The notes under the pieces are model-generated. The model had not been told where the DNA came from. It did not search any database and saw nothing but the letters and a program-made list of their open reading frames with translations. Shown one piece after another: positions 10,370 through 12,251 of a stretch of DNA of 64,000 bases. The stretch covers positions 1-64,000 of the forward strand of contig NIVC01002416.1 of assembly GCA_002269645.1 (NCBI GenBank). The letters run 5' to 3'. Position 1 is the first letter of the stretch. The number at the start of each line of letters is the position of its first letter. The position numbers and the translations under genes are program-made. This stretch comes from Macrostomum lignano. Lineage: Eukaryota.

Positions 10370-12251
10370 TCATCGCTTTCCAATTTTCTCCCGCGACTTT
10401 CTTTTCTTATCCTTTTTGGCTTTCTTTTTCTTTTTTTTATTCGCTTCTTTCGTCTCCGCGTGGCCAGTCGACACTTTTGGTGGCTCCTCGTGTTCCGCCG
10501 AAATTCGTTGGTGATCCCGGTGATTCCGGTGGCCGGTGCGACGTCGCCCAGCATCGTCGGAGGAGCGACCTCCCATCTGGCTGAGCATCTCCTCGCGCAC
10601 CAGAAACACCGTGGACTTGTCCCGGTCATCTTCTCGCTCCCTCTTGTATTCCAGATGCTGCTGCTGCTGCGAAGGAGGAGGAGATTGCAGTCGCTGATCG
10701 TTGGAGTTTTCGCTGGTGGCCAATCGCAGCACCCGTTTCGTGTCGAGGTCGCGATCGATCACCCCGCGGGTCTGCAGGCGGACGAAGTCCACCAGACGGC
10801 GAACATAATCCAGGTTCGGACCGCGGCTGCCGCTGGCCTGTGACACCTGGGCGTTTGGCGCAGGTGAGAGTGAAGATCGTATCAGTCAATCAGTCACTTC
10901 ATCAGTCAGTCAGTCAGTCAATCTTATCTATCTATCTATCTATCTATCTATCTATCTATCTATCTATCTATCTATCTATCTATCTATCTATCTATCTATC
11001 TATCTATCTATCTATCTATCTATCTATCTATCTATCTATCTATCTATCTATCTATCTATCTATCTATCTATCTATCTATCTATCTATCTATCTATCTATC
11101 TATCTATCTATCTATCTATCTATCTATCTATCTATCTATCTATCTATCTATCTATCTATCTATCTATCTATCTATCTATCTATCTATCTATCTATCTATC
11201 TATCTATCTATCTATCTATCTATCTATCTATCTATCTATCTATCTATCTATCTATCTATCTATCTATCTATCTATCTATCTATCTATCTATCTTTCTATC
11301 TATCGATCTATCTATCTATCTATCTATCTATCATCTCACCTGAAAAGCGATCTCACTGGGCTCCGCCCTGCCCAGCCAATACGGATTGTCTTCTTCCTTC
11401 CTAGCAATGTACACCCAACAAGTTTCAGTCTTGCCAGTGGTGCAGTTCTCTACCACCAGCTGGCTCCTGTGGAAGCCCCTGGTAGCCTGGTGAGCGTCAG
11501 CTCTGGCAATGTCCTCGATAGCATGGCGGCGGCTCAGTTGGTAGAGGCAGCCGAGGACTCCGGAGTCCGGGTTGGGTACGATGGTTGCTATGCGACCGGG
11601 CTGTTTGAGGGAAGTGGTTGAAAAGACCGATTTTTATAAAATTCCCAGCAAGCCAATCAGCAGCCTGCAATTCCTAGTCAGCCAATCAGCAGCCTGCAAT
11701 CCCCAGCCAATCAGCAGTCTGCAATTCCTAGTCAGTCAATCAGCAGCCTGCGATCCCCAGCCAATCAGCAGCTGACTAGCTAATCATCAGCCTGCAAATC
11801 CCAGCTAATCAGCAGCTTGCAATCCCCAGCCAGCCAATCAGCAGCCCCCAATCCCCAGCTAATCAGCAGCTTTCAATCCCTAGCCAATCGGCAGCCTGCA
11901 ATTCCCAGCCAGCCAATCAACAGCCTCCAATCCCCAGCCAATCAGCAGCCTACAATCACCAGCCAGCCAATCAGCCGGCAGCCTCACCCAGCTGGGCCTG
12001 CCGTAGTCCTGGAAAGAGCCCTGGAAAAGCTGTCTAGAAAAGCCCAAGGCTATGCCAATCGCCAGCTCCTTGTAGCGAAAGTGCGGCTTCCAGATCCAGG
12101 ATCCGTAGGCGAAAATCGATTGAATTCGCGAATCATCAGCGGCGAGAGTGTCGATGGCCGACTTCGATGACTGCTGCTGGCTTGGCAACAGGCTGCCGCT
12201 TTGCTGGCTTGTTGTTGAGGCTTTTGCTGTTGCCAAGTTTGCAGTCGACAT
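10370..12251 (-). CDS. CHAC: ChaC-family gamma-glutamylcyclotransferase paralog A, predicted catalytically impaired; exons 12251-11988, 11600-11340, 10846-10370
   Basis: IFAYGSWIWKP...GFSRQLFQGS...|PGRIATIVP...LGCLYQL...NPYWLG...EIAFQ|VSQASGSRGPNLDYVRRL follows the ChaC motif order. Both introns are phase 0 GT-AG. Lys-rich C-terminal tail. Confidence 0.88.
10924..11333. repeat. (TCTA)n / (GATA)n microsatellite in ChaC-A intron 2
   Basis: Directly visible. Confidence 0.97.
11645..11980. repeat. Degenerate ~25-29-bp minisatellite carrying AGCCAATCAG, in ChaC-A intron 1
   Basis: Unit roughly cagccaatcagcagcctgcaatccc, about 12 copies. Confidence 0.85.

Follow-up and report, generated by a model that had tools for sequence, protein, structure and literature searches.

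A divergent ChaC-family gene of Macrostomum lignano that appears to lack the catalytic glutamate

The window analysed here, a 64,000-nucleotide stretch of the Macrostomum lignano genome to whose positions all coordinates refer, carries on its minus strand a gene of the ChaC family, which we call copy A (10370 to 12251). The rate at which glutathione is degraded in the cytosol is set by ChaC enzymes, and work on them has dealt with stress signalling, ferroptosis, Notch processing and the fate of stem cells. Searching the window with the spliced product of copy A (tblastn) matches its three exons and a second, very different ChaC copy at about 51.8–52.9 kb on the same strand, paralog B. The interest of copy A lies in its active site, from which the catalytic glutamate of the family appears to be missing.

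Copy A encodes 333 amino acids in three exons, all in phase 0. Exon 1 (11988..12251, 264 nt, codons 1–88) runs from the ATG at 12249-12251 to ...QDYGRPSW, where the donor GTGAGG follows. Exon 2 (11340..11600, 261 nt, codons 89–175) encodes PGRIATIV...EIAFQ, including the helix that normally carries the family's Arg-Glu pair, and exon 3 (10370..10846, 477 nt, codons 176–333 and the stop) supplies the end of the ChaC domain, GSRGPNLDY, together with a tail of 118 residues. The stop codon, TGA at 10370-10372, is followed directly by a second one (TGATGA), and an in-frame stop lies 31 codons upstream of the ATG. Both introns are in phase 0: intron 1 (11601..11987, GT..AG) ends in the acceptor AAACAG and shares its position with the sole intron of paralog B; intron 2 (10847..11339, GTGAGA..CCCAG) ends in GCCCAG and is absent from paralog B. 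Both donors thus read GTGAG and both acceptors CAG, the cis-splice consensus reported for this species (PMC8629364), and the ChaC motifs run on without interruption across the junctions (DYGRPSW/PGRIATIV and EIAFQ/VSQASGSRGPNLDY). A preliminary description of the locus, made from the sequence, had called the reading frame and splice sites intact, and so they are. Origin by retrocopying is ruled out by the two introns, one of them in a position common to paralog B.

The introns are repetitive. Intron 2 is almost entirely microsatellite, (TATC)x103 at 10925-11336, and intron 1 is filled by a 25–29-bp minisatellite, AGCCAATCAGCAGCCTGCAATCCCC, at 11640-11965; a third array, fifteen copies of the 15-bp unit GCCCCTGGTGCTAAA, occupies 12687-12911, upstream of the start codon by about 440 bp. 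The three UniRef models of copy A all begin at Q17 (12201-12206), directly after a CAG, and the 35-nt spliced leader of M. lignano, which ends in ATG, would be in frame there (M-QSGSLL...). This point (12203) could serve as a trans-splice acceptor, although its context, AGCCAG, does not fit the motif [T/C]TNCAG.

Membership of the family is clear from the Pfam ChaC profile (PF04752), against which copy A scores 104 bits (cut-off 21; E 1.2e-29); the match aligns residues 46-209 with positions 3-166 of the 176 in the profile. By sequence, the best solved relatives are the human CHAC2 structures (phmmer, 1.4e-18). An AlphaFold model built with 103 relatives has a predicted local distance difference test score (pLDDT) above 90 for residues 41-200, with low confidence for 1-40 and for about 210-333. 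Foldseek places the predicted domain on CHAC2 6KY1_A (E 1.8e-18, target-normalised template-modelling score 0.90, root-mean-square deviation 1.6 Å), and matches it to yeast GCG1 and human GGCT as well. On this model, copy A is a very divergent member of the ChaC family that keeps the GGCT/BtrG fold.

Individual residues were compared in two alignments, one of copy A and paralog B with 148 relatives and the other of copy A with 103 relatives; column counts over 148 exclude paralog B. In CHAC2, the active-site cavity is formed by Y6-G7-S8, H39, R40, Y87, Y109 and Y144 (PMC7022552), while in CHAC1 the substrate is bound by YGSL, through backbone amides, and by R72, and mutation of E115 inactivates the enzyme (PMC12756093). 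Copy A keeps YGS, Y152 (CHAC2 Y109) and Y189 (CHAC2 Y144), and has lost the equivalents of H39, R40, Y87 and E83. Its substrate-binding loop reads YGSW instead of YGSL (Y49 G50 S51 W52; 12096..12107), ungapped against CHAC2 Y6-L9, at a fourth position that is L in 132 family sequences, I in 13, V in four, and never W. Its HRG motif reads DYG (D82 Y83 G84; 12000..12008), in ungapped, high-confidence alignment with CHAC2 H39-R40-G41, although the His is present in 138 of the 148 relatives and the Arg in 147. Both changes had been pointed out in the preliminary description, and in the alignment both are unambiguous. Further along, F131 (11472..11474) replaces the Tyr of GGY (CHAC2 Y87; Tyr in 140/148), and A122 falls in a column that is Leu in 145.

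Altogether, copy A departs from the family at eight of the 29 columns that are at least 90% conserved; the relatives have a median of one such mismatch and a maximum of five. Two of the eight are conservative (G48A, V92I), and the others cluster in the HRG and L-x-x-RE-x-GGY motifs. The 21 columns that are kept include all conserved structural Gly and Pro residues, PGR-T, G-x-N-x-x-Y, N186 and Y189, so that the loss looks selective rather than general. As aligned, the pocket is remodelled, not merely disarmed, and the idea of a pseudoenzyme is better grounded on several lost pocket residues than it would be on one.

The one residue on which that idea was first built is the catalytic glutamate, and here the alignment needs care. 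The Arg-Glu pair is R in 147 and E in 146 of the 148 relatives. At the corresponding motif paralog B carries AHLTQREVRLGGY; copy A reads ARADAHQATRGF (residues 120-131). In all 14 MAFFT alignments—12 of them L-INS-i, E-INS-i and G-INS-i runs on four random subsets—H125 (CAC) and Q126 (CAG), at 11487..11492, lie under the pair, each codon one base change away from CGC and GAG, respectively. From the preceding invariant Gly, moreover, the distance is 21 residues, ungapped, both to Q126 in copy A and to the Glu in human CHAC2. The glutamine codon that the preliminary description gave at 11487-11489 is there, exactly, as the CAG of Q126. Its further statement, that this Gln stands under the catalytic Glu, agrees with MAFFT, but the 12-mers that it gave, read without a gap, put His125 under the Glu instead, and Q126 comes into line with it only if the linker between Glu and GGY differs in length by one residue.

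Other methods choose other registers. A custom HMMER profile built from the relatives places the Glu column on A127, phmmer against CHAC2 places it on T128, and BLASTP against paralog B pairs AHQATR with AHLTQR, leaving the Glu deleted in copy A. Counted from the sequences, the spacing from the Gly to the aromatic residue is 26 in copy A, 25 in CHAC2, 27 in CHAC1 (with its motif as quoted in the preliminary description) and 28 in paralog B; since these spacings differ, one indel must be placed somewhere. The predicted helices do not decide the register: AlphaFold draws this one from 115 to 127 in copy A and from 130 to 147 in paralog B, so that the end of the helix comes three residues after Glu144 in paralog B but one after Q126 in copy A. 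What all registers have in common is that no acidic residue occurs between 124 and 135 under any aligner, and thus no other Glu takes up the catalytic site. Because the position is without Glu or Asp in every register, the loss of the catalytic Glu from copy A is robust, and Glu-to-Gln is the best-supported register among several. Among the 150 best relatives, and apart from two incomplete models, only one other protein is without the Glu, the metagenomic P0093 (HRLQVLGGY).

That this Glu is the catalytic residue of CHAC1 and that its mutation is inactivating, as the preliminary description took for granted, agrees with the inactivity of E115 mutants (PMC12756093); in PMC10072464, E115Q serves as an experimentally inactive CHAC1. 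The Arg of the pair is another matter. The CHAC2 chains in PDB (6K95, 6KY0 and 6KY1) read DFGEKGGYR, with Gly instead of the family-typical Arg before Glu83. The Arg is therefore not essential for activity, and R125H alone means little.

Beyond the ChaC domain, residues 216-333 (10373..10726) form a C-terminal extension rich in K, R, E, S, D and Q, which AlphaFold predicts with low confidence. It ends in a polybasic segment, KKKKKKAKKDKKRKSREKIGKR (10373..10438), with several K-K/R-x-K/R motifs of the classical nuclear localisation signal type. The preliminary description had the tail end in ...KSREK, about five residues short; the protein continues with IGKR, and then stops. Codon usage in the tail scores positive in frame 0 only (0.086, against -0.206 and -0.295 in the other frames). 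The coding tail also contains a canonical AATAAA (10436..10441, codons N311-K312), which precedes the stop by 64 nt; the 270 nt that follow the stop are free of canonical polyadenylation signals. Cleavage prompted by the AATAAA would yield a non-stop mRNA or a shorter tail. A nuclear location for the protein, as proposed at the outset, finds an echo in the signal-type motifs of the low-pLDDT tail, but it draws on the polybasic motif only, which the AATAAA may truncate, and is a guess.

How might all this be put together? Our preferred reading, to which we would give a probability of roughly one half, is that copy A is a retained, catalytically impaired and re-specialised protein with a ChaC fold. 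It would be a lineage-specific, fast-evolving paralogue of the glutathione-specific gamma-glutamylcyclotransferases, in which the fold has been kept and the chemistry lost. Its general acid/base Glu is gone (Gln, in the best register); the pocket-lining His-Arg pair, reported to bind substrate, is now Asp-Tyr; the YGSL loop carries a bulky Trp; and the Tyr of GGY is without its hydroxyl. So equipped, the protein should be unable to cyclise glutathione's gamma-glutamyl group usefully fast, and canonical binding of glutathione has probably been lost as well, in which case any function it has would be exercised by binding, not catalysis. Most plausibly, it would pair or compete with active ChaC paralogues, M. 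lignano having at least three other ChaC lineages; there is precedent for regulation between paralogues in that high levels of CHAC2 restrain CHAC1 (PMC12756093). Alternatively, the remodelled pocket may bind another ligand. Targeting to the nucleus, the nucleolus or nucleic acids may come in addition from the tail, which is long, charged and disordered.

The non-catalytic or re-specialised ChaC of the preliminary description thus survives in outline—catalytic Glu lost, fold kept, frame intact—but the damage is not limited to the Glu. The glutathione-binding sensor suggested along with it is unlikely, and is not supported, because the Arg of HRG that is reported to bind substrate has gone, too. 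A bolder version, in which copy A would be the first natural ChaC pseudoenzyme, expressed, selectively maintained, dead, directed by its tail to the nucleus or nucleolus, and either regulating glutathione turnover indirectly, for instance as a partner or rival of its active paralogues, or binding a new ligand in its remodelled pocket, we consider doubtful and, taken as a whole, unlikely; literature searches returned no description of a natural ChaC pseudoenzyme, and nothing relevant on ChaC in Macrostomum.

Several considerations weigh against the reading of copy A as a retained, re-specialised protein. The family alignment drives the AlphaFold model, which is no proof that the protein folds. 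Glu-to-Gln, by itself, is not decisive for enzymes of the CHAC2 type, given that CHAC2 E83Q is partly active (PMC7022552). The Lys-rich end may be absent from the mature protein as we have read it, and the region of exon 3 is poor in stop codons in several frames, so that little can be read from an open tail. M. lignano has, besides, a highly duplicated genome. An exhaustive HMMER search of 1.84 billion representatives, standing for about 15 billion proteins, brought up no orthologue: among those from outside M. lignano, none exceeds 41% identity to copy A. The database entries for copy A are two partial gene predictions, UniRef A0A1I8J4P5 and A0A1I8G6P8, and a third, A0A1I8F7Z9, that is frame-shifted and whose shifts could mean a second copy in decay. 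Finally, if function was lost recently, most of the divergence may be older than that loss, and the simulations described below ignore divergence that accumulated while the protein was still an enzyme.

Such considerations lead to a serious rival, which we find possible, if on the unlikely side: that copy A is a redundant duplicate adrift, a young or as yet unbroken pseudogene or a gene under strongly relaxed constraint. PMC10468722 describes M. lignano as a hidden polyploid, and in so duplicated a genome an active site may be lost because nothing maintains any one copy. At least four ChaC lineages are present in the species: copy A, paralog B, the A0A1I8ILN3 group and PAA63547.1. Of the 148 aligned sequences, copy A diverges the most: its mean identity is 29.5%, where the median is 39%, and a neighbour-joining tree of them gives it the longest terminal branch. 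Drift would also fit the swelling of both introns with tandem repeats, the AATAAA within the coding sequence, and the absence of copy A from the NCBI PAA protein set, where PAA63547.1 does have an entry. It would fit A0A1I8F7Z9, as well, which corresponds to the same DNA (11337-12203) read in alternating frames with a few substitutions, and which represents either another copy that has taken on several indels or an older assembly with indel errors.

On the other side stands, first of all, the frame itself, intact for 333 codons over three exons with consensus splice sites. When the coding sequence of copy A was allowed to drift neutrally by substitution, without indels, 28% of the runs still had an open frame when amino-acid divergence had reached 6%; at 23% the share was 1.3%, and at 28% it was 0.6%. 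Copy A has changed 28% of its conserved columns (8/29), a divergence at which about 1% or fewer of the simulated frames stay open. Drift of the whole gene thus seems an unlikely source of an intact frame with two consensus introns. Codon usage, too, is coding-like in frame 0 only, in domain and tail alike, and the conserved structural Gly and Pro residues have not been touched by whatever removed the pocket. Nor is missing annotation a sign of silence, since paralog B, which looks functional, is not in the protein databases either. The integrity of the frame and the retained structural residues offer an indirect argument that purifying selection may act on copy A.

That copy A is still an enzyme, with another substrate or with its acid/base residue relocated, for example to Glu117 or Asp123, strikes us as quite improbable. 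The thought is not idle. CHAC2 E74Q and E83Q retain reduced activity, and it has been proposed that CHAC2 can use two alternative Glu residues (PMC7022552); with Q126 opposite E83 in the MAFFT register, Glu117 falls opposite E74. The register near the catalytic position is uncertain by one to three residues, and the offsets from the helix end differ between the two copies; the loop YGS and both cavity tyrosines, Y152 and Y189, are kept; and the Gly before E83 in CHAC2 suggests that R125H alone would be tolerable. But the family shows no conservation at the column equivalent to E74 (E in 33, A in 31 of 149), and CHAC1 and GGCT both lose their activity when the Glu equivalent to the catalytic one is mutated (PMC12756093, PMC7022552). 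The stronger argument against canonical activity, in our reading of the alignment, is the loss of the substrate-binding Arg of HRG, nearly invariant elsewhere and here a Tyr, with its neighbouring His changed as well.

An artefact of assembly or gene modelling—wrong exons chosen, or consensus errors in a repeat-rich region—is scarcely credible: tandem-repeat introns are hard to assemble, and the public models do disagree, A0A1I8G6P8 (P0002) skipping residues 151-200 and A0A1I8F7Z9 (P0003) shifting frames, but the changes in copy A are substitutions, not indels; A0A1I8J4P5 (P0001, M. lignano, partial) is 100% identical over 235 residues that cover both splice junctions and all altered motifs; and P0002 (also M. 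lignano, partial) and P0003, each from another locus or assembly, also read ARADAHQ, the former with YGSW and DYG besides. Beyond these entries little was recovered: a word-indexed protein search with copy A returned two M. lignano entries only, and look-ups of exact products (P0001, P0003, the exon-1 read-through open reading frame and the exon-3 open reading frame) matched no further genomic copies, transcripts or contigs.

If copy A is expressed, and conserved in Macrostomum, then it offers a natural dead ChaC with which to probe what the fold does apart from catalysis. As a model animal, M. lignano is transgenic and regenerates, and its several active ChaC paralogues would serve for comparison. 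If, instead, copy A is no more than a duplicate adrift, it is the ordinary kind of by-product that comes with so highly duplicated a genome.

Genes and repeats also occur elsewhere in the window. An open frame of 491 codons with much polyQ and polyP (4861-6336, minus) shares the strand of copy A and lies 4 kb downstream of it; it matches nothing in Pfam, and the database yielded no homologue at E<=1e-10. In the interval that separates the two ChaC copies, an exon-sized open reading frame on the plus strand (26864-27730) matches the RFX BCD domain (Pfam PF25340, 2.2e-47), and so marks an RFX transcription-factor gene. An intact open reading frame of 353 amino acids (56443-57504, minus), with a Mos1-type HTH domain and a partial DDE transposase domain, is a mariner-like element. 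Directly 3' of paralog B is a tandem array of more than 2 kb (49457-51685), open in several frames on both strands, with repetitive open reading frames of more than 700 amino acids (HRFSSPT..., for example).

Paralog B itself (51779..52970, minus; exons 52970-52656 and 52252-51779) is modelled as a protein of 262 amino acids. Its N-terminal 31 residues have very low AlphaFold confidence, and its start codon is uncertain. It has no counterpart in the protein databases searched, where it drew distant relatives only. It scores 227 bits against the family profile, versus 157 for copy A, and has YASV in place of YGSL, with an Ala at the Gly position that is found in only three of the 148 relatives. 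From its motifs, it looks to be an intact, canonical ChaC.

It is with paralog B that the comparison with known systems best begins. The two copies have species, family and strand in common, lie 40 kb apart, and share the position of the first intron (phase 0, just before PGR). They differ in that paralog B keeps HRG, RE and GGY, and mismatches one of the 29 conserved columns whereas copy A mismatches eight. At 25–29% identity, they are not recent duplicates.

With human CHAC2 (PDB 6K95, 6KY0, 6KY1), its best match among solved structures in sequence and fold alike, copy A shares the length of the domain, the YGS loop, PGRV-T, the equivalents of Y109 and Y144, and G-x-N-x-x-Y. In contrast to CHAC2, its sequence replaces H39-R40 by Asp-Tyr, L9 by Trp and Y87 by Phe, and is without Glu at the position of E83; it adds some 45 residues at the N-terminus and 118 at the C-terminus; and the identity is only about 30%. 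The engineered E115Q mutant of CHAC1 resembles copy A in one respect: in the best register, copy A carries by nature the Glu-to-Gln change that was engineered there. The laboratory mutant keeps its substrate pocket, however, whereas copy A has also lost the equivalent of R72 and has an altered YGSL, and hence is not to be assumed to bind glutathione.

Two further proteins complete the picture. The metagenomic ChaC P0093 is, like copy A, without the Glu, but it keeps HRG. A module of the Paulinella chromatophore transit peptide (9I08; fold-search E 1.5e-4) has a GGCT-like fold, and is a distant structural relative rather than a ChaC. Together, these two suggest that the GGCT fold can be reused without catalysis.

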